Source: Paramicrosporidium saccamoebae KSL3
Lineage: Eukaryota; Fungi; Cryptomycota
Assembly: GCA_002794465.1 (NCBI GenBank)
Contig: MTSL01000205.1
Location: forward strand, 123,753-155,752
Reading direction: 5' to 3'
Length of the DNA stretch: 32,000 bases
In this document: piece by piece, positions 1,839 through 29,987 of the stretch
Position numbering within the stretch: position 1 is the first letter of the stretch
Layout of the letters: every line of letters starts with the position of its first letter
The notes under the pieces: generated by a model
The model's input: only the letters and a program-made list of their open reading frames with translations
Database searches by the model: none
What the model was told of the DNA's origin: nothing
Made by a program: the position numbers and the translations under genes

Positions 1839-4800
1839 ATGCTTTCCGTGTCGGAAGATGACGACATTTTCTCAGTTGTTCTGGGATTCCACTTTGCAAG
1901 TATTGAGCCGCTACAGGATGGTAGGTTCTACCCCCTAGACTCCTAATATAAAGTCCATGAATGTGTTTTGGGAGCACTGAATAGCCAAGCCTCTTATTTT
2001 ACGTTTTCAACAGTTTCCGACTCGAATTTTCTGTCAGCTGATCATCCACAAATTGATCTAGACTCACTTATCAGCGCTGCGTCTTTTCCACATGAAATGT
2101 AAACCCGTCTGTCTGGCCTGACATTTAGTAATTGGCTATCAGATACCTGTGAATCGCATGAACCCGTCGCTATTTTACCTCGCATGAATACGGCAGAGCC
2201 AATTGTTGGGGGAATGGTAAGTGGTACGCCTTTGACTCCAGAGAGCGAGGATTGGGATAAGAGCTCCGTTCTTAGGGATATGTCTGCGTTGAGGCCAAAG
2301 ATTGTGCTACGAATTGGAAATCGGCCAGATAATTCTGTTGAGGAGAGCGAGACCCAAAGACAGGCTGTCCCCAAAGTGCGCATTAAGGTTAGCAAGAAGC
2401 AACCTGTTGCAGTTAAAGAGATTGCTCCACCTGTTGACAATACGCTCGACATTATCAATGTCCCCCTTGGTGAGGTTGGAGAGCAAGTCATATCCAAATA
2501 TCTGTTGTCTCAACAGCGTCCTGAAATACCATCAAAGCTGTCTGAGAGAATCATGGACTATCTAGAGACTTTCCAGTCAATAGAAACTGTCGGGTTGGCC
2601 GCACTTTGCTTGCTGGGTGGTCGTCTTCAGGACAAAATCAAGGCCAAGCTTGCACCGAGAATTGAATCTGTTTGGGAAGTCTTGAGGTCTAGCATTCCTG
2701 TCAAAGATCAAGTGTGTCTGCTGCGCGTGGGACTGTCTGAACTTGTTGCATTCATTCAAACTGTCAAGGTTGACGAAGCGTGGCTGCTTTCTCTTTCAAC
2801 TTCCTGTGTAAAATCTTTGAACAGCATGAATTTGGATCAAGATATAATAGGCTTGCTTGTTGAGCTGTTAGTTGTATCGTCATCAAAGTCTAACGTTATC
2901 CGTGGACATGTTATTGACGAATCAATGGCTCTGGAAGATGCCAGTCTCGTGCAGTGTCTCGATATTGAAAGATTAAGCCTTCCTTGGTACGTTGCATTCC
3001 TGATTATGGATTTTACTCATCGACTTCAATGCATTCCAAGCGAGGAAGCAAAGCAAAAGCCAAAACTGTCAGCGTTTCTTGCAGCCCTTGACCAGTTCTT
3101 CTCTTCAATTGATAGTCTGACCATCAAAATGCTTGACTGGTTAGAGAAGGTTGCCAAGGGTGCCGTGCAGCTGTCATTACTCCCCTCCTGGCTTCCTACA
3201 GTTATAATTGTCAAGCATATTTACTCGCTTGTGCTAAAGGCACTAATGTCGAAAGATTTAAAGTCTGACATACGACTCCGGCTTCTTGATATTGGAGGTA
3301 CAATCGTGGCGGCATTTAGGAAAGTCGAGACTCTTGGAATTACGGCCAGTGTTCCGCCTTACCAGGCGCTCGCCGCCTTCAGTGACTCTGTGCGCGCAGA
3401 CTTTGTGAATCGCAGAATAGTGTCGGAGAGACTCTGCATGATTTTTGGGATTGGTGATTTCAAGGATCTATTGGACAACATTGAGTACGATGCCCAGCTG
3501 GGGTGCTTCCTAAAGTCTTTCGATGTGGGCCCATCGTCAGATAAATTCCTGGGACTTTTGCTGCAAAGTCTGAATGATCCAGGTCCGCTGATTCGCGCCC
3601 GATCTATTAAAGAGTTTCAGAGAATCATCAAACTCGATGATCCTATTGTCAAGAATGAGCACTTTATTGCTACTATTCAGCGAAGAATTGACGATGCATC
3701 CCCCTCGGTCAGAGAGTCTGCTATCGACTTTATAGTGGCGATCCGACATTCTGATGCCAAAGATGTGATTATATTGGTGCTGGATAAATTTTCAGATTCG
3801 TCTCTTTCAGTCCGGAAGAAAGCTATCAAACTTGCTTCGGATTATCTGATCCAACATCCGGATGATGCAAATTCTGCCGACATTAAGGCAGCCTTGCTTT
3901 GCGAGTGTGTTTCTGATATCAAAGTGTCCGCTGATCTCGCATTTTCAAACACTCTAAGCAACTGGATCTCGCCAATCATCAAGTCTCTAGAGACTGTTAA
4001 AGTCGATGGAAATACTGTAGTTTGGCGCCAGACTCTTGCTCTCTTTACAGCCGACATTGTCAAGACAATACGCAGTCCGCGGTCTGACTTGAATCTTTTC
4101 AAGGCTTTCTTTGCCAAGCTGTCATTCGATCCGATGCATGGTCCATTGTTCGTTGAAGTTTGCGAAGGAATCGTCGATCTGTTATTTGAGACCTTGGTGA
4201 GCTCTATAGAAGAAGGAAGTACTAGTGCTACCAAGTTTATCCTGGCATCCCTAGTTACAATCATTGGAGACCGCGATGTCGGCGTGTCAAAGCACTTTCG
4301 TCTCATTTGCTCTCTAATTCTCTCTGATGATCCTGAGACAGTTGAACATTCCTTGCTTCTAGTGCAAAGATGTCTCCAGGGCGACGACCATCTGATTTAC
4401 AGGCAGGACCCAGAACTGTGTGGAAATTTATTCAAACTTGCATTTCGTGGCTCTGAAGCCATAATTCGAGGGTCGCTGATGTGTCTCTTTGACATTGCCA
4501 AGACCAGTACACAAGTAAAGAGTCAACTGGGAGCCATGTTCAACAAAATGACAAAGTTTATCGCCGCCAAGTCAAAAGTTCAGGATCCCGAAACGGTTCA
4601 TTTGCTATGTCGAGGGGTCTTGGGTGCGTGCCTGATTGCCCGGATGGGCAAAGACCTGGGGTTTTCTTGGCCAATAACAACAAATGCGGCTGTCCATCTC
4701 GTATCCCTTGTGAAGGAGAACCCCAATAGACTGGTAGACGTATTTTGCAACGTCTCCATTGCCGAACTGATTGTTGCAGACCCGCTCTCGTCTTTACAAG

Positions 4801-5993
4801 AGCCCATGCATCAAATGATTATGGATGGATTGGACAATGGGTGCGAATCATCAATATTAGCTCTTCTCAAGGGATTCCATGAAATGTTGAAAAAGGACAA
4901 ACAAGCATCCCATGAATCTAGCTTTGTGGTGGACGCTGAGGCAAAACTGGACTATTCTTCGTCACTGTCAACTGTATATCAAAACTTTTTGGTAAGCATC
5001 AGGAATACTGCCCGCATACCCAATCCCGAGGTTATTGAATCCTGTGGCCTGCTTCTAGCTTCCATGCTCCGCAGAGGCATGTCTCACCCTCATGCTCTAG
5101 TTCCGCATGTTTTGCGATTATGGCAATGTCCTTGGCCCAAGGCTGCTGCTCGCCTGCACGAAGTCTGTATAGAGGTTGTTGACCGATTTGAAGCGTATGT
5201 AAGCTCCTCTCTCTCCCAGGTGGTGAAGCTTTCGTACGAATGGGGCTCCCAAATACAGCCGGACATGAAAGGTTACGTTTTAGACGAAGATAATCTTGCT
5301 CAGTCATATTATTCGCCACTTTATGAAGCTCTAAAGACGAAAACCAAACGATTGGACTTGATATCTGCACTGCTTCGGGAAATGGAGCACCCTGATCCCG
5401 ATTTGAATTACATACAGTTTGTCTCTGAGGCGCTTGCCGAACTCTCATACAAGACAATGGATGAAGTTTCAGTTGTCATCAAAAGGCTCTCGGACATTGT
5501 AGCGTTTGATGATGATCTTCATGACGAAACTCCCAAAATTGTGAGACAACTGATCCTACTTCAGCTGAGACTTCACATGGGACACTGCTACCGCATCACA
5601 GAATTGTATCATCCCTAAAACCTTACTTAATTATGTAGTCAAGCGGAAGCGTTATTGTCGCAAGCAAAACGCGACAGTCCTTGCAGGCGTCTTTCTGTGA
5701 CTCCGATCGTCCTTCAGGAGGTAAAGACTCTGATACACCTGCCAGTAGAGGCATTGAACAAGATGGTAATCCATTGGAAGCATCTCATTTTCTAGATTGA
5801 GCAACTTGTCACCGACTCGAAGGGCGGCGGTATGCAGCAGTCATCAGGCGCCACCACTCTACCAAAAAAGAAGCGAACATTCGAGACAAGGTTGCTTAAT
5901 AGAAGACCCAAATCTTCTATCAAGAAAAGACGCAAGACCACTAACGATAGTATGTGTGTCTCAGATCCTGAAGAATCAGAATTGGAGGATTAA
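1839..5993 (+). CDS. SCC2: Cohesin loader Scc2/NIPBL/Mis4 (HEAT-repeat protein)
   Basis: Main ORF 2184-5618 has HEAT repeats (LNDPGPLIRARSIK, IDDASPSVRESAID, FSDSSLSVRKKAIK) and the C-terminal GMSHPHALVP region. Introns 5606-5638 and 5766-5795 extend it to a basic/acidic tail ending at TAA 5991-5993. An N-terminal extension from ATG 1839 via introns 1921-1953 and 2099-2128 is in frame but less certain. Confidence 0.82.
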
Positions 5994-6137
5994 TGGCTCC
6001 GCTGTAATATAAACCCAAACCCATAAAGTTAGATTAGGCTGTTGTCTATAACTTGGCCAACCAGGGTTGGAAGTTTCAGAATGTCTGTCATTCATTGTGA
6101 ACGCTGTCCATCTATTGAGAAATAGGTATGTTTCGCA

Positions 6138-6206
6138 GTGAGAATGATGAGATTACTGCCGCCCCAGTCTGAACAACACTGTAGATTGGTAGTATCACTG
6201 ACTCGC
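6138..6206 (+). ncRNA. Box C/D snoRNA, snR67/U31(SNORD31)-type guide for the LSU P-loop Gm (E. coli G2251, yeast G2619)
   Basis: Box C ATGATGA 6144-6150, D' CTGA 6169-6172, D CTGA 6198-6201, terminal stem GTGAG/CTCGC. The D' guide TGCCGCCCCAGT is complementary to conserved LSU ACUGGGGCGGCA, and the D+5 rule lands on the second G of CUGGGGC. Confidence 0.85.
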
Positions 6207-6296
6207 TCTCTGGTTCAGTTCCCTTCTCATCTCTCAGACTTGCTCATGTCAGTGTCTGTCGGTGCCATATGCTTATGAGGTATTAAAGGTGCATTG

Positions 6297-6396
6297 CAAG
6301 ACGGGAATGATGACGCTAGCCATAATTCGCAGTTTCCACCATAGAGCTTGCGCTCGATGATGGCCGAATACTTCCTTGGAAGTCTGATCCGTCTTG
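6297..6396 (+). ncRNA. U14: U14 snoRNA (snR128/SNORD14)
   Basis: Box C ATGATGA 6307-6313 and box D CTGA 6384-6387. Terminal stem CAAGACGG/CCGTCTTG, extendable by TGCATT/AATGCA. Domain A ATTCGCAGTTTCCACC and domain B CTTCCTTGGAAGT-CTGA match vertebrate U14 CAUUCGCAGUUUCCACC and CUUCCUUGGAUGUCUGA. Confidence 0.93.
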
Positions 6397-6595
6397 AAAT
6401 GCATTGTGACTTTTTCTCATCTCTAGATTCCTTATTAGGACAAGCCCAAAGCAGACTAGTGTAAATAAATTTGTTAATTGTATATTTGCCCAGTTTTGTC
6501 GATAATTTTCCCATATTTGGGTGGCCGGTTGTTTGGTTAGGGAATAAAGCCTGTAAGGAGATGAATGCAGTCACATCGGATTGCAATCAAGAGCA

Positions 6596-7687
6596 ATGAC
6601 TCCTGAAGATAGCACAACAGCCAGCTACACATTCCAAACAGACAGAAAAGTCGCACTACTCACCGGAATCACTGGACAAGATGGATCCTATCTTACAGAG
6701 TTTCTCTTGGCAAAGGGCTATGAAGTGCATGGCATCATTCGTCGCTCCTCCTCTTTCAACACGGGCCGACTTGAGCATCTGTACGCTGATCCTCACACCA
6801 AGCCCAAAATGTACCTTCACTATGGTGACTTGACCGACTCTTCCTGTCTCGTAAGCATTATCAGCCGAGTGAAGCCTACTGAGGTTTACAACTTGGCTGC
6901 CCAAAGCCACGTAAAAGTCTCCTTTGACATGGCTGAATACACTGGAGATGTCGACGCTTTGGGTACCCTCCGTCTTCTTGATGCCATTCGTACTTGCGGA
7001 ATGTCTGACAAAGTGCGCTTCTACCAAGCGTCAACCAGTGAGCTGTACGGCAAGGTGGTTGAGACTCCTCAGAAAGAGTCCACCCCATTCTATCCCCGCT
7101 CCCCATATGGTGTGGCCAAACTCTATTCTTACTGGATCGTTGTTAACTATCGAGAGGCATACAACATGTACGCCTGCAATGGAATCCTATTCAACCACGA
7201 GTCACCTCGTCGTGGCCGCACCTTTGTTACTCGTAAGATCAGTCGGGCTGTAGCCGAGATCTCCCTCGGCCAGATCCCATGCGTTTACCTTGGAAACTTG
7301 GATTCCCGCCGTGATTGGGGCCATGCTCGTGACTACATTGAGGGAATGTGGCTTATGCTGCAACAAGATAACCCCGACGACTATGTACTCGCCACAAATG
7401 AGTGCCACTCTGTTCGCGAATTTGTCGAAATGGCCTTTGATGTTGTGAATGTAAAGATTACCTGGGAAGGAAAGGACGAGAAGGAAATTGGCAGAGATCA
7501 GGATGGAAATGTGCGAGTTCGTGTTGATCCTGCCTACTATCGTCCAACCGAGGTCGATCTATTGTTGGGAGACTCTACCAAGGCCCGTAAGAAGCTGGGA
7601 TGGATACCAAAGTGCTCGTTCCCTGAACTCGTTCGGGAAATGGTTCTCAGTGATATTGACTCGGCTAAGCGTCGTGACCAGCAATAA
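6596..7687 (+). CDS. GMD: GDP-mannose 4,6-dehydratase
   Basis: [16 protein letters not shown](P)-binding motif, [19 protein letters not shown], catalytic [17 protein letters not shown] and RDWGHA. Intronless; first ATG at 6596. Confidence 0.97.
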
Positions 7688-7889: not shown

Positions 7890-9242
7890 ATGTTGGGGGG
7901 ACGGAATAACGGCACCTCAAATATGAGGACAGTGTACTCATTTCCCGAGTTGCGAAATGTTGAAATATTACAGTGCATGGAAGACTTGCGGATCCCGCTG
8001 AGTGAAGCTGAGCTTACAAAGCCTAGCACGGCAATCGTTCAGCGAATTTTTGAATCCTTTGCGGACATTTTCATGGGAATTAGCAAGGAACAGCTCGGAC
8101 AACAGCCGACATTTCAAGTGGTCGAAACTTTAGAACATCCGGACTTGCACCTTGACTCTATAAATCTAGTGGCCTTTTATCGTTTATTGCTGCGGCTGAT
8201 GATTGAAGTTGGAATTGAAGACTTTTCCTTGCGAGACTTGATCAAGCCCGAAACTCCTCGTCTTAGGATAATACTCTCGGCAGTAATCAATTTTGCAAAG
8301 TTCCGAGAGGAGCAATTATCAGTGTTTGAAGAATTTTCACGACGTGGAGAGGAAGCTGTTGAGCAACGGGTGAAGCTATCCAAGCGGCACGAAGAGCTAG
8401 CTGTCAGAATTGCACATGTGAAGGCAAAACATCGAGATGAAGAGCCGGCAACTCTCCAGCTAAAAGACGAAATGGCAAACATGATTCAAATTCTCCGAGA
8501 TTTAAAGAAAGAACAGACCGCCCTTTCTGCCGAATTGGATGCTTACAAGTCTCGTAAAAGCGAGGTTTCAGAAAAAATGGCGCAGACGCAATTCCTGCTG
8601 GGGAATGTGAAGCAGGAATGTAACAAGCTGAAATCGAGAATTGTCCACAGTCCCGAAAAGCTCTTGCAAATTATAGCCGAGATGAATGCCAGCATTAATA
8701 ATGAAAAGACCAACCTTTCACAGCTTGAGAAGCGTTCTCGCGAGCTCCAAATGAAGCTGGAAGCGTTGGCGCATCTTGAGCAAGAGTTGCTGCGTACTCT
8801 ACAAGGAATGGAGTCCTTGAATGGAGACTTGAGAAAGAGGGATGAGTTGCTTTCTAAGGTTCGGGAAGAACGAGATGCAATTGAGCGGCAACAGATTCTG
8901 GCCAAGGACCTCTCCATCAAGGAGACCCAAATAATCCGACAGATGAATGCTGCACAGGATAAGGTTTCTCGCCTGCAGCGATCTCAACAAGAGCGGCGTG
9001 ACAATATGGGCTTGCGATTAAAGACGCTCCAAGAAGAATACCAAGTTGTTGCCGAAGACCGCAGTAGAGCAGCCAGCAAAATTGAACAGAGCGATAAGCT
9101 TGTAAAGGACTTTGAAACTCGAATGGGTGAGCTGCGCCGTAGTCATGAAACAGAAGTGGCATCGATGCGCACCGAATGTGTTGCTCTCAAAGCCCGTGTT
9201 GTTTCATATACTAATGAGATGAAGAAGCATTTAAAGTCTTAA
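7890..9242 (+). CDS. NUF2: Kinetochore NDC80-complex subunit Nuf2
   Basis: N-terminal CH-like domain (YSFPELRNVEILQCM, DFSLRDLIKPE..RLRIILSAVINFAKFRE) followed by a long coiled coil, including SRIVHSPEKL. Confidence 0.93.
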   Translation: MLGGRNNGTSNMRTVYSFPELRNVEILQCMEDLRIPLSEAELTKPSTAIVQRIFESFADIFMGISKEQLGQQPTFQVVETLEHPDLHLDSINLVAFYRLLLRLMIEVGIEDFSLRDLIKPETPRLRIILSAVINFAKFREEQLSVFEEFSRRGEEAVEQRVKLSKRHEELAVRIAHVKAKHRDEEPATLQLKDEMANMIQILRDLKKEQTALSAELDAYKSRKSEVSEKMAQTQFLLGNVKQECNKLKSRIVHSPEKLLQIIAEMNASINNEKTNLSQLEKRSRELQMKLEALAHLEQELLRTLQGMESLNGDLRKRDELLSKVREERDAIERQQILAKDLSIKETQIIRQMNAAQDKVSRLQRSQQERRDNMGLRLKTLQEEYQVVAEDRSRAASKIEQSDKLVKDFETRMGELRRSHETEVASMRTECVALKARVVSYTNEMKKHLKS

Positions 9243-28546: not shown

Positions 28547-29674
28547 TTAGAAGCACTTGCGATGGACAATCGAAGGTCCAGATTCGTCGTACTCTTGCTT
28601 GGAAATCCACATTTGCTGGAAGGTAGATAGAGAAGCAAGGATAGAACCACCAATCCATACAGAGTATTTGCGTTCCGGGGGAGCGACAACCTTGACTTTC
28701 ATGGTAGATGGCGCAAGGGAAGTAATCTCTTTTTGCATGCGCTCGGGAAGACCAGAGTACATGGTAGTTCCACCAGAAAGAACAATGTTGCTGTATAGAT
28801 CCTTTCGAATGTCTACGTCACAGATCTTGATGGAATTGTATGTGGTCTCATGGATACCGGAAGCTTCAAGGCCGAGGAAAGAGGGCTGGAAGAGAGCCTC
28901 TGGAGCGCGGAAACGTTCACCTCCAATGGTAATAACTTGCCCGTCTGGAAGCTCGTAGGACTTTTCCACGGCAGACGATTTGAGGGAATCTTCATATTCC
29001 TGGTTGTAGTCTTGAGCAACATAGCAAAGCTTCTCTTTGATATCGCGCACAATTTCGCGTTCAGCAGAGGTGGTGAATGAGTACCCCCTCTCAGTAAGAA
29101 TCTTCATCAAATAGTCAGTAAGATCTCGGCCAGCCAGATCAAGACGAAGGATGGCGTGCGGCACAGCATATCCTTCGTAGATTGGCACAGTGTGTGTGAC
29201 ACCATCGCCAGAGTCCATGACAATACCAGTTGTACGGCCCGAGGCATAGAGAGACAGAACTGCTTGAATCGCGACGTAGAACGCAGGAACGTTGAACGTC
29301 TCAAACATAATCTGAGTCATTTTCTCACGGTTGCGCTTAGGATTGAGCGGAGCTTCAGTGGAGAGAACAGGGTGTTCTTCGGGAGCTACTCGGAGTTCAT
29401 TGTAGAAAGTGTGATGCCAAATCTTCTCCATGTCGTCCCAGTTGGTGACAATGCCGTGCTCAATAGGATACTTGAGACTGAGGATACCACGCTTTGACTG
29501 CGCTTCGTCGCCGACGTACGAGTCCTTTTGACCCATTCCGACCATGACACCTTGGTGGCGAGGTCTTCCGACAATCGACGGGAATACAGCCCGAGGAGCG
29601 TCGTCCCCAGCAAATCCGGCCTTGCACATGCCGGAGCCGTTGTCAATGACCAAAGCCATAACGTCGTCTTCCAT
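28547..29674 (-). CDS. ACT1: Actin
   Basis: [40 protein letters not shown]...IVHRKCF; 375 aa from ATG 29674, CDS intronless. Confidence 0.99.
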
Positions 29675-29987
29675 ATTGCTATAATTCAAGTTCTTTTGGA
29701 GGGTGGATGGAGAAAGGTTGTCCTGTAGACTCTCTACACCAGTGGCGATAAAGTGGCTGGGGTCCCCGAGCTATTTATTTGGACCGCGTTGCCAGCATGA
29801 ATAAACCGAAAAAGGAAACCAATTCACAATAAAAGCAGCGTATTCTATTGGTGGAAAGGCAGTGGCTGACGGTTTAGAGCCAGCTCCCGTTTAGAAGTGA
29901 TATTAAAGTTTATCTACATATTGCTGTATATAGCAACATATTAATGTGTATGTATGCATAGTATGGGACAGAAGTAACTGCCGGGTT

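Follow-up and report, generated by a model that had tools for sequence, protein, structure and literature searches.

Mammalian UHG, which is SNHG1, hosts U22 and U25-U31 in its introns, and GAS5 is likewise a non-coding host of small nucleolar RNAs (snoRNAs). Vertebrate U14 is carried by the protein-coding hosts RPS13 and HSPA8, and Saccharomyces cerevisiae has the dicistronic units snR190-U14 and snR67-snR53. The locus described here combines U14 with a U31/snR67-type guide RNA in the spacer between the genes SCC2 and GMD (GDP-mannose 4,6-dehydratase), and we read it as a probable miniature host gene. It lies in a stretch of 32,000 nucleotides (nt), hereafter the window, whose position n is n + 123752 on record MTSL01000205.1 (assembly GCA_002794465.1). 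The organism is Paramicrosporidium saccamoebae KSL3, an amoeba parasite of the Rozellomycota (genome accession MTSL00000000; PMC5701793).

The closest described systems are fungal. In Neurospora crassa, introns hold 45 of the 55 box C/D snoRNAs, and five clusters reside in UHG-like hosts with short open reading frames (ORFs) only; cluster V co-transcribes CD16, the snR190 homologue, with CD37, which is U14 (PMC2780460). The same paper names mammalian UHG as an analogy for the Neurospora hosts and notes the polycistronic snoRNA clusters of S. cerevisiae (PMC2780460). In the Ascomycota, juxtaposed snoRNA introns without exons between them ("complex introns"), their stepwise splicing and the conversion of intronic into intron-less clusters have been described (PMC3596301). 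Long introns with C/D-like motifs occur in the microsporidian Poly-A ORF and S23 genes, and also in the S23 gene of P. saccamoebae; the authors suggested that these long introns may encode snoRNA-like RNAs (PMC6349667).

The spacer at 5994-6595 between SCC2 and GMD is without any feature in the public annotation. Its probable content is an independent, non-protein-coding host gene of the UHG/GAS5 type, with one snoRNA in each of two introns. An original prediction, made from the letters of the window, had proposed such a host. This kind of gene is known already from fungi and animals, and the earlier reading is essentially correct.

The two RNAs are the sole matches in the 32 kb, both strands included, to a plain pattern of RTGATGA...CTGA with a terminal stem of at least 5 base pairs (bp). 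An Rfam scan of the whole window by E-value placed SNORD31 of clan CL00053 at 6137-6207 (34.2 bits, cut-off 40; E 3.7e-4) and SNORD14, family RF00016, at 6302-6391 (51.3 bits, cut-off 64; E 3.3e-8), each at full model length. A composite pattern of the U31 guide and U14 domain A found 0 matches in 100 shuffles. The parts of the two RNAs are as follows.

6138-6206, + strand: U31/snR67-type box C/D snoRNA, with the C box at 6144-6150, the D' guide at 6156-6168 and the D' box at 6169-6172
Same snoRNA, + strand, further parts: C'-like box at 6180-6186, D box at 6198-6201, terminal stem 6138-6142/6202-6206, internal stem 6156-6160/6188-6192
6302-6391, + strand: U14 snoRNA, with the C box at 6307-6313, domain A at 6326-6339 and an internal hairpin at about 6343-6356
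Same snoRNA, + strand, further parts: C'-like box GATGATGG at 6356-6363, domain B guide at 6371-6383, D box at 6384-6387, terminal stem 6302-6305/6388-6391

The U31-type RNA has the boxes C AUGAUGA, D' CUGA and D CUGA and a 5-bp terminal stem (GUGAG/CUCGC). Its D' guide, GCCGCCCCAGU, is the same as the guide in the consensus sequences of SNORD31, GlsR4 and DdR13. On the 23S ribosomal RNA (rRNA) of Escherichia coli (rrlH), GCCGCCCCAGU-CUGA forms 10 contiguous pairs with A2247-G2256, and U2257 adds an eleventh as a G-U wobble. Counted upstream from the D' box, the fifth nucleotide is paired with G2251, which is the second G in the P-loop GGGG. This P-loop G is the site of human U31 (Gm4166), yeast snR67 (Gm2619) and Arabidopsis U31 (PMC3511168, PMC5824354), and the snR67 D' target, 25S-2619, is kept across Dikarya and Chytridiomycota (PMC5824354).

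Yeast snR67 has a second guide at box D (Um2724), and a guide of this kind is absent from the U31-type RNA in the lineages compared. The box D target of snR67 is confined to Saccharomycotina and so does not define the family (PMC5824354). The U31-type RNA would be a single-guide snoRNA with an internal closing stem, because the stretch upstream of box D is unconserved among lineages except for GGCAG, whose pairing partner is CUGCC at the guide's 5' edge. The internal stem is CUGCC/GGUAG in the window and CUGCC/GGCAG in the relatives. The D' guide, the D' box and the C' box all lie inside the region that it closes, and the 5' edge of the guide is tied up in the stem itself. The Rfam consensus has an analogous UACC/GGUA, and the stem may be a feature of the whole SNORD31 family.

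U14 has the C box AUGAUGA and the D box CUGA, and its stem CGGG/UCCG is 100% paired in seven lineages. The hallmark of domain A is a 13-14 nt element, UUCGCAGUUUCCAC, complementary to the 5' region of 18S rRNA. In the window domain A reads TTCGCAGTTTCCAC, which matches the Rfam consensus exactly and is invariant in 9/9 lineages. Domain B, CUUCCUUGGAAGU-CUGA, is one position off the consensus CCUUCCUUGGAUGUCUGA and is invariant in the clade. Its putative target, 18S Cm414 in yeast and Cm462 in human, was assigned via literature tables (PMC3511168, PMC2780460) and the match to the family consensus. The proposal of U14 with a P-loop guide of the snR67/U31 type is borne out by domains A and B and by the fifth-nucleotide pairing in the P-loop. 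The predicted sizes of roughly 70 and 95 nt agree with the 69 and 90 nt that lie between the terminal stems.

A further feature was observed at 6318-6339. Across the clade AGCCA stands upstream of AUUCGCAG, with a variable insert of 2 nt (4 nt in L015) between the two. Without the insert, AGCCAUUCGCAG would be a perfect complement of what we take to be the 18S sequence ...CUGCGAAUGGCU... This suggests that the domain A duplex of U14 is extended, with a small bulge.

Related loci were found through GMD. Nine further proteins, from environmental assemblies, fall into the 90%-identity cluster of GMD, and these lineages are 86-93% identical to the window protein. The region upstream of GMD is present in L003 (equivalent to L014), L004, L006, L008, L015 and L016, which together with the window make seven lineages. 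The order SCC2-[U31-type, U14]-GMD is kept in 6/6 of the further lineages; the search for the same pair in related genomes that the original prediction proposed thus gave it between SCC2 and GMD in all six. When the 600-nt spacer was compared with the relatives by blastn, only the two snoRNA bodies were detected. SNORD14 scores 52.7-59.6 bits in all 8 related loci, with E-values of 2e-8 to 2e-10, and the SNORD31 gathering score is passed by the orthologues in L003 (42.5 bits) and L004 (41.0 bits).

Both RNAs are under selection as structured RNAs, because compensatory changes occur in the terminal stem of the U31-type RNA and in the hairpin of U14. The terminal stem shows such changes in 6/6 of its pairs, with 93.5% of the cells paired; this pairing was reached by 0/500 shuffles, and slid controls gave 31-44%. 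The U14 hairpin shows them in 5/5 pairs, with 95.2% of the cells paired, and again 0/500 shuffles reached the observed pairing.

The two snoRNAs lie within two GT-AG intervals. The predicted exons and introns of the host gene are these.

6068-6125, + strand: exon 1, with a putative 5' end and a 14-codon ORF at 6081-6125 inside; unalignable between lineages
6126-6237, + strand: intron 1, 112 nt, with a GTATGT donor, a CTCAT branch-like motif and a CAG acceptor
6238-6279, + strand: exon 2, 42 nt, non-coding, sequence unconserved
6280-6426, + strand: intron 2, 147 nt, with a GTATTA donor, a CTCAT branch-like motif and a TAG acceptor
6427-6490, + strand: exon 3, with an AATAAA poly(A)-like signal at 6464-6469 and a putative 3' end

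The first interval reads GTATGT...CTCAG and the second GTATTA...TCTAG, and the acceptor end TTCTCATCTCT(C)AG is common to both. The short ORF runs from the ATG at 6081 to the TAG at 6123-6125, and the GT at 6126 directly adjoins this stop. The original prediction had described the 14-codon ORF, the intervals of 112 and 147 nt and the near-identical acceptors, and all of them were found where it had placed them.

Ordinary introns of the window are much shorter. A strict scan for ORF-bridging introns, used in place of two permissive scans that were too noisy, gave 11 clear cases; these measure 29-34 nt, have GTA(A/T) donors and show a yTnAy branch-like motif that precedes YAG by 5-12 nt. The claim that almost all other introns measure 29-39 nt agrees with these eleven, as far as they reach. 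Exon structures rebuilt from gene spans and product lengths by a fewest-introns search were rejected, for neighbouring mini-introns were merged into false long ones. The snoRNA-bearing intervals are 3-5 times as long as a usual intron. Once the snoRNA (69 or 90 nt) is taken away, about 43 and 57 nt remain, near one ordinary mini-intron; in intron 1, 11 nt precede the delimited snoRNA and 29 nt follow it. The donors and branch motifs of the two intervals also resemble those of the eleven short introns.

In the seven lineages the first interval measures 110-119 nt and the second 137-148 nt, and every interval starts with GTA and ends with YAG. GTA stands 9-27 nt upstream of 14/14 snoRNA copies. 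A branch-like motif with YAG follows 18-42 nt downstream of 12/14 copies, against a joint background of 0.017 at random positions in the same loci. The branch-like motifs, seen in most intervals, are CTCAT, GCTAAT, GCTAAC or TACTAAC, the TACTAAC type occurring in intron 2 of L006. The two misses are the first interval of L008, where GCTAAT is visible and the miss is an artefact of the scan window, and the first interval of L016, which has no clear motif. Exon 2 is 36-84 nt long in the lineages that have it and 0 nt in L016; it is unalignable and keeps no reading frame. The splice signals are kept though the flanks are too diverged for blastn, and therefore selection for splicing is suggested. 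These comparisons support the view that the snoRNAs are intronic, as the original prediction had it.

Relatives beyond the cluster show other arrangements. A metagenome scan with the composite pattern (U31 guide, a gap of 100-160 nt, U14 domain A) gave 0 matches. The D' box varies in other organisms that have the pair (CTTA, CATA, CGGA, CCTA), and a U14-only pattern was used instead, which recovered at least 120 loci with 170 U14 copies. A U31-type guide lies near U14 in several of these loci. In two of them, L123 and L038, GMD follows directly downstream (81% and 79% identical), and L123 also encodes Nuf2; the two are deeper members of the same clade.

Exon 2 is absent from L016 and L123. In L016 (2081-2335) the AG of the U31-type interval adjoins the GT of the U14 interval, tataaaAG|GTATCA, and in L123 (reverse strand, about 670-1000 of the reverse complement) the junction is tttctAG|GTGATC. 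Alternatively, L016 and L123 may have a single intron of about 255 nt that bears both snoRNAs. L038 (395-720) is the deepest relative found. Its U31-type RNA has the variant boxes GUGACGA and D' CGGA and stands 25 nt from U14; TATAAAA lies about 38 nt before the first snoRNA, with the CCCATAAA motif further upstream. The L038 locus appears to be an intron-less dicistron version. Splicing would then not be obligatory for the snoRNA pair, because the L038 version has no splice signals.

These loci bear on whether the window itself holds a dicistronic unit independent of splicing, similar to yeast snR190-U14 and snR67-snR53, in which the GT and AG signals would be relics and the snoRNAs would be released from an unspliced precursor by endonuclease cleavage and exonuclease trimming. 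The deeper L038 fits such a unit, since it shares the synteny and has no AG in the 25 nt between the snoRNAs and a TATA element close before the first; the direct succession of AG and GT in L016 and L123 fits it as well. De-intronization of snoRNA hosts is documented in yeasts, according to work cited in PMC3596301. However, splice signals and intron sizes are kept in six lineages in which the surrounding sequence is beyond blastn detection, and the donor and branch motifs match the bona fide mini-introns of the genome. The spacer between the snoRNAs is also without a stable stem-loop of the RNase III type and folds worse than shuffles (z = +1.5). We consider this explanation of the window unlikely.

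The two-intron host is the arrangement of the window, L003, L004, L006, L008 and L015, the exon-less one that of L016 and L123, and the intron-less dicistron that of L038. It is possible, if only as a tentative reading, that they are three architectures of one orthologous pair at one site, within a narrow Paramicrosporidium-like clade (GMD at least 79% identical).

The pair also occurs outside this clade. L028 (reverse complement 2900-3400, equivalent to L065:280-800) derives from an AT-rich eukaryote with 27% G+C, where 412 nt separate a U31-type RNA (D' box CAUA) from U14 on the same strand, and GT/AG-like signals flank each of them. A 185-nt segment between these snoRNAs has all its sense frames closed; its opposite strand is open for 62 codons with no Pfam match. 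In L134 (reverse complement 420-1260), a eukaryotic contig with 37% G+C, U14 and a U31-type RNA (D' CCUA) flank an exon of uL14/RPL23 (Pfam Ribosomal_L14, E 1e-13). There the pairing has the opposite order and a protein-coding host. The original prediction had not recognised the pairing of U14 with a U31-type RNA from model organisms, and L028/L065 and the uL14 gene of L134 run counter to its apparent novelty. The idea of an ancient U14-U31 linkage was dropped, as about four independent cases among at least 120 U14 loci would be near what chance co-hosting gives.

The exons are non-coding, as had been proposed. Across the lineages no conserved exonic ORF was found; the longest has 14 codons and is specific to this strain. 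An ordered series of motifs, CCCATAA(A/G), a TATA-like element and (G/A)CCAGGG(T), precedes exon 1 in the window (6020-6067) and is common to most lineages. It may be a promoter element of snoRNA or ribosome-biogenesis genes of the clade. The candidate control elements of the spacer are listed here.

6020-6027, + strand: CCCATAAA motif, a possible promoter element upstream of the host gene
6047-6051, + strand: TATA-like box (TATAA), of putative function
6060-6067, + strand: ACCAGGGT motif just 3' of the TATA-like box, the likely region of the transcription start
6511-6549, + strand: possible GMD promoter, CCATATTTGG ... TTGTTTGG ... GAATAAAG, about 50 nt before the GMD ATG at 6596

CC(C)ATAA(A/G) precedes the TATA-like box in the window, L003, L004, L008, L015, L016 and L038, where the spacer is otherwise unalignable. 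Within the window the CCCATAAA motif shows no enrichment (2 matches vs 1.5 expected). The TATA-like element has the same relative place in all lineages, for example cttataaaa in L008, cttatatat in L015 and ggtataaaa in L038. (G/A)CCAGGG(T) occurs in the window, L003, L008, L015, L016 and L123, and has a single match within the window. AATAAA-like motifs stand 0-60 nt after most stop codons of the window, and A/T-rich ones stand 25-45 nt into exon 3 of the relatives; AATAAA at 6464-6469 is the putative poly(A) signal of the host.

The position of the host raises the question of whether the three exons are leader exons of GMD, with both snoRNA introns in the 5' untranslated region (UTR) of its mRNA. 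Introns of protein-coding genes commonly host snoRNAs, and the pair stands directly upstream of GMD in 9/9 lineages with the region, including L123 and L038. GMD may have a promoter of its own: by eye, L003, L004, L006, L010, L015 and L016 have similar CATAT, GT(G/T)TTTGG and TATA-like elements upstream of GMD. In most lineages a TATA-like element precedes the GMD ATG by about 40-75 nt (40-55 nt except L015), and it does so also in L010 and L017, contigs without the host. Against a GMD leader, most lineages have both the separate promoter-like series upstream and, 25-45 nt inside exon 3, an AATAAA-like signal. An independent host is favoured over one in the GMD 5' UTR because, in a compact genome, the leader left after splicing would come to about 270 nt and contain at least 4 upstream ATGs. 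With exon 3 and GMD about 600 nt apart in L015, it would exceed 600 nt there. The 90%-identity GMD cluster contained no transcript-derived copy from P. saccamoebae. The leader explanation seems rather unlikely to us.

The snoRNAs could also be processed from read-through or 3' UTR transcripts of SCC2, which lies on the same strand with its stop about 130 nt upstream of intron 1. A AATATAAA signal at 6007-6014 follows this stop ahead of the CCCATAA and TATA-like elements, and introns in the 3' UTR would mark the SCC2 mRNA for nonsense-mediated decay. SCC2 would moreover be expected to be weakly expressed, and U14 is presumably needed in quantity. Such an origin is very improbable.

Some observations weigh against the independent host gene. 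At the gathering threshold Rfam gave zero matches in the whole window, both scores being below the curated gathering scores; the Rfam check of the original prediction, aimed at SNORD14 and SNORD31, thus fails at this cut-off and succeeds by E-value. The shortfall of U14 is mainly due to its shorter internal hairpin and spacers, and the SNORD14 gathering cut-off is a curation threshold, not a functional feature. Target pairing was tested only against E. coli 23S, the Rfam consensus and literature tables; the fetched loci contained no eukaryotic rRNA, and the 18S segment was also without a match in a viral-contig scan. Splicing, the transcript start and the poly(A) end are read from sequence comparison. 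The host is on the GMD strand, exon 3 starts 169 nt before the GMD ATG, and the linkage is kept in every lineage including the deepest. The candidate GMD promoter is weakly conserved, with 37% column identity for the GMD-proximal region in a MAFFT alignment, a point in favour of the leader explanation. The snoRNAs of L038 are closely spaced without splice signals, as noted above.

With the independent host still the favoured reading, the following path is proposed. Transcription by RNA polymerase II would begin shortly after the TATA-like box, at about 6047-6067, and give a primary transcript of about 420 nt with three tiny exons and two introns. The box C/D core proteins would bind the C/D motifs while these are still intronic, and splicing would free two lariats. 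Debranching and exonucleolytic trimming, halted at the terminal stems, would then yield two RNAs, the U31/snR67-type one at about 69 nt and U14 at about 90 nt. The former would direct 2'-O-methylation of the large-subunit P-loop G (E. coli G2251, yeast Gm2619, human Gm4166). Domain A of U14 would act in early 18S processing, and domain B would guide a methylation that corresponds to yeast Cm414. The joined exons, about 160 nt without a conserved ORF, would be a by-product.

The public annotation of the window places SCC2/Nipped-B at 2184-5993, GMD at 6596-7687 and Nuf2 at 7890-9242; the identities of the neighbours SCC2/Nipped-B and GMD (ATG 6596) come from precomputed Pfam matches on this annotation. 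At the 5' end of SCC2, upstream of the annotated start at 2184, a 30-nt ORF-bridging intron candidate was seen at 2099-2128 (GTAAAC...TTTAG). It links an upstream open frame to the long SCC2 ORF, and the deposited model may be without a 5' exon. Small introns were read near the 3' end of SCC2 at 5606-5638 and 5766-5795, and these are not reconciled with the 255 nt of introns that the annotation implies. An ORF of 119 amino acids on the minus strand (6227-6586) was judged spurious, being antisense to U14 in a spacer that is unconserved outside the snoRNAs. A match to mir-3533 at 28790-28872 on the minus strand (42.4 bits vs cut-off 104) lies inside the coding sequence of actin (ORF 28547-29689, minus strand; Pfam Actin, E 1e-147) and is not a microRNA. 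In the P0006 lineage, the contigs of four independent assemblies (L010-L013) all end about 306 nt upstream of GMD, near the host start; a repeat at the snoRNA locus of that lineage, or heterogeneity among its strains there, may be the cause.

With the present analysis the P. saccamoebae genome gains two deeply conserved RNAs of ribosome biogenesis that its annotation lacks. What is new is the organism, the unannotated status, the partner that U14 has here, the extremely small size of the host, and a canonical U14 in a lineage sister to Microsporidia, as that of P. saccamoebae has been reported to be (PMC5701793). Neither U14 nor any small-subunit guide turned up when Microsporidia were surveyed (PMC5499648, PMC5824354). 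The persistence of a canonical U14 with both functional domains in the sister lineage helps date the loss of U14. In a genome with introns of about 30 nt, an intron of 110-150 nt flags an embedded snoRNA, and here the excess length is the snoRNA. The plasticity of introns and exons in snoRNA hosts, known in Ascomycota, is extended to Rozellomycota-like lineages. If true at the RNA level, the three architectures would form a natural, closely spaced series for the gain or loss of snoRNA introns. The current understanding of snoRNA production is unchanged by these results.

Compared with the microsporidian long introns, the locus is alike in that a few long introns are conserved amid miniature ones. 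Those introns, however, sit in protein-coding genes and only putatively hold snoRNAs, and the likeness is one of description. Similar to mammalian UHG and GAS5, the exons are unconserved and non-coding and the functional products reside in introns, here predicted ones, and in mammals too U31 is carried by such a host. Unlike the gene here, the mammalian hosts carry 8-10 snoRNAs and are 5'-TOP genes with long introns. The original prediction had framed the gene by these vertebrate examples; non-coding intronic hosts do exist, as it said, whereas the vertebrate frame is too narrow, since Neurospora has one that bears U14 (PMC2780460).

The yeast units resemble the locus in that the U14 and snR67 families are both members of two-snoRNA units, and L038 resembles their intron-less type. 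In contrast to the gene here, the yeast units are intron-less and depend on RNase III (Rnt1) and exonucleases, and the partners differ. The junctions in L016 and L123, where AG adjoins GT, have the intron-intron structure described for internal exon loss in the complex introns of Ascomycota. These are, however, Rozellomycota-like environmental lineages, and the window keeps a 42-nt exon 2.

Cluster V of N. crassa is similar to the P. saccamoebae locus as a non-coding host of the fungal lineage with short ORFs, one box C/D snoRNA per intron (predicted introns in P. saccamoebae) and U14 among two cargoes. Its splicing was shown by reverse transcription polymerase chain reaction (PMC2780460), whereas here splicing is deduced by comparing lineages. 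The partner of U14 also differs, being a U31/snR67-type P-loop guide here and snR190 in Neurospora, and the present host is a much smaller gene, its exons measuring about 40-60 nt and its introns 112 and 147 nt.

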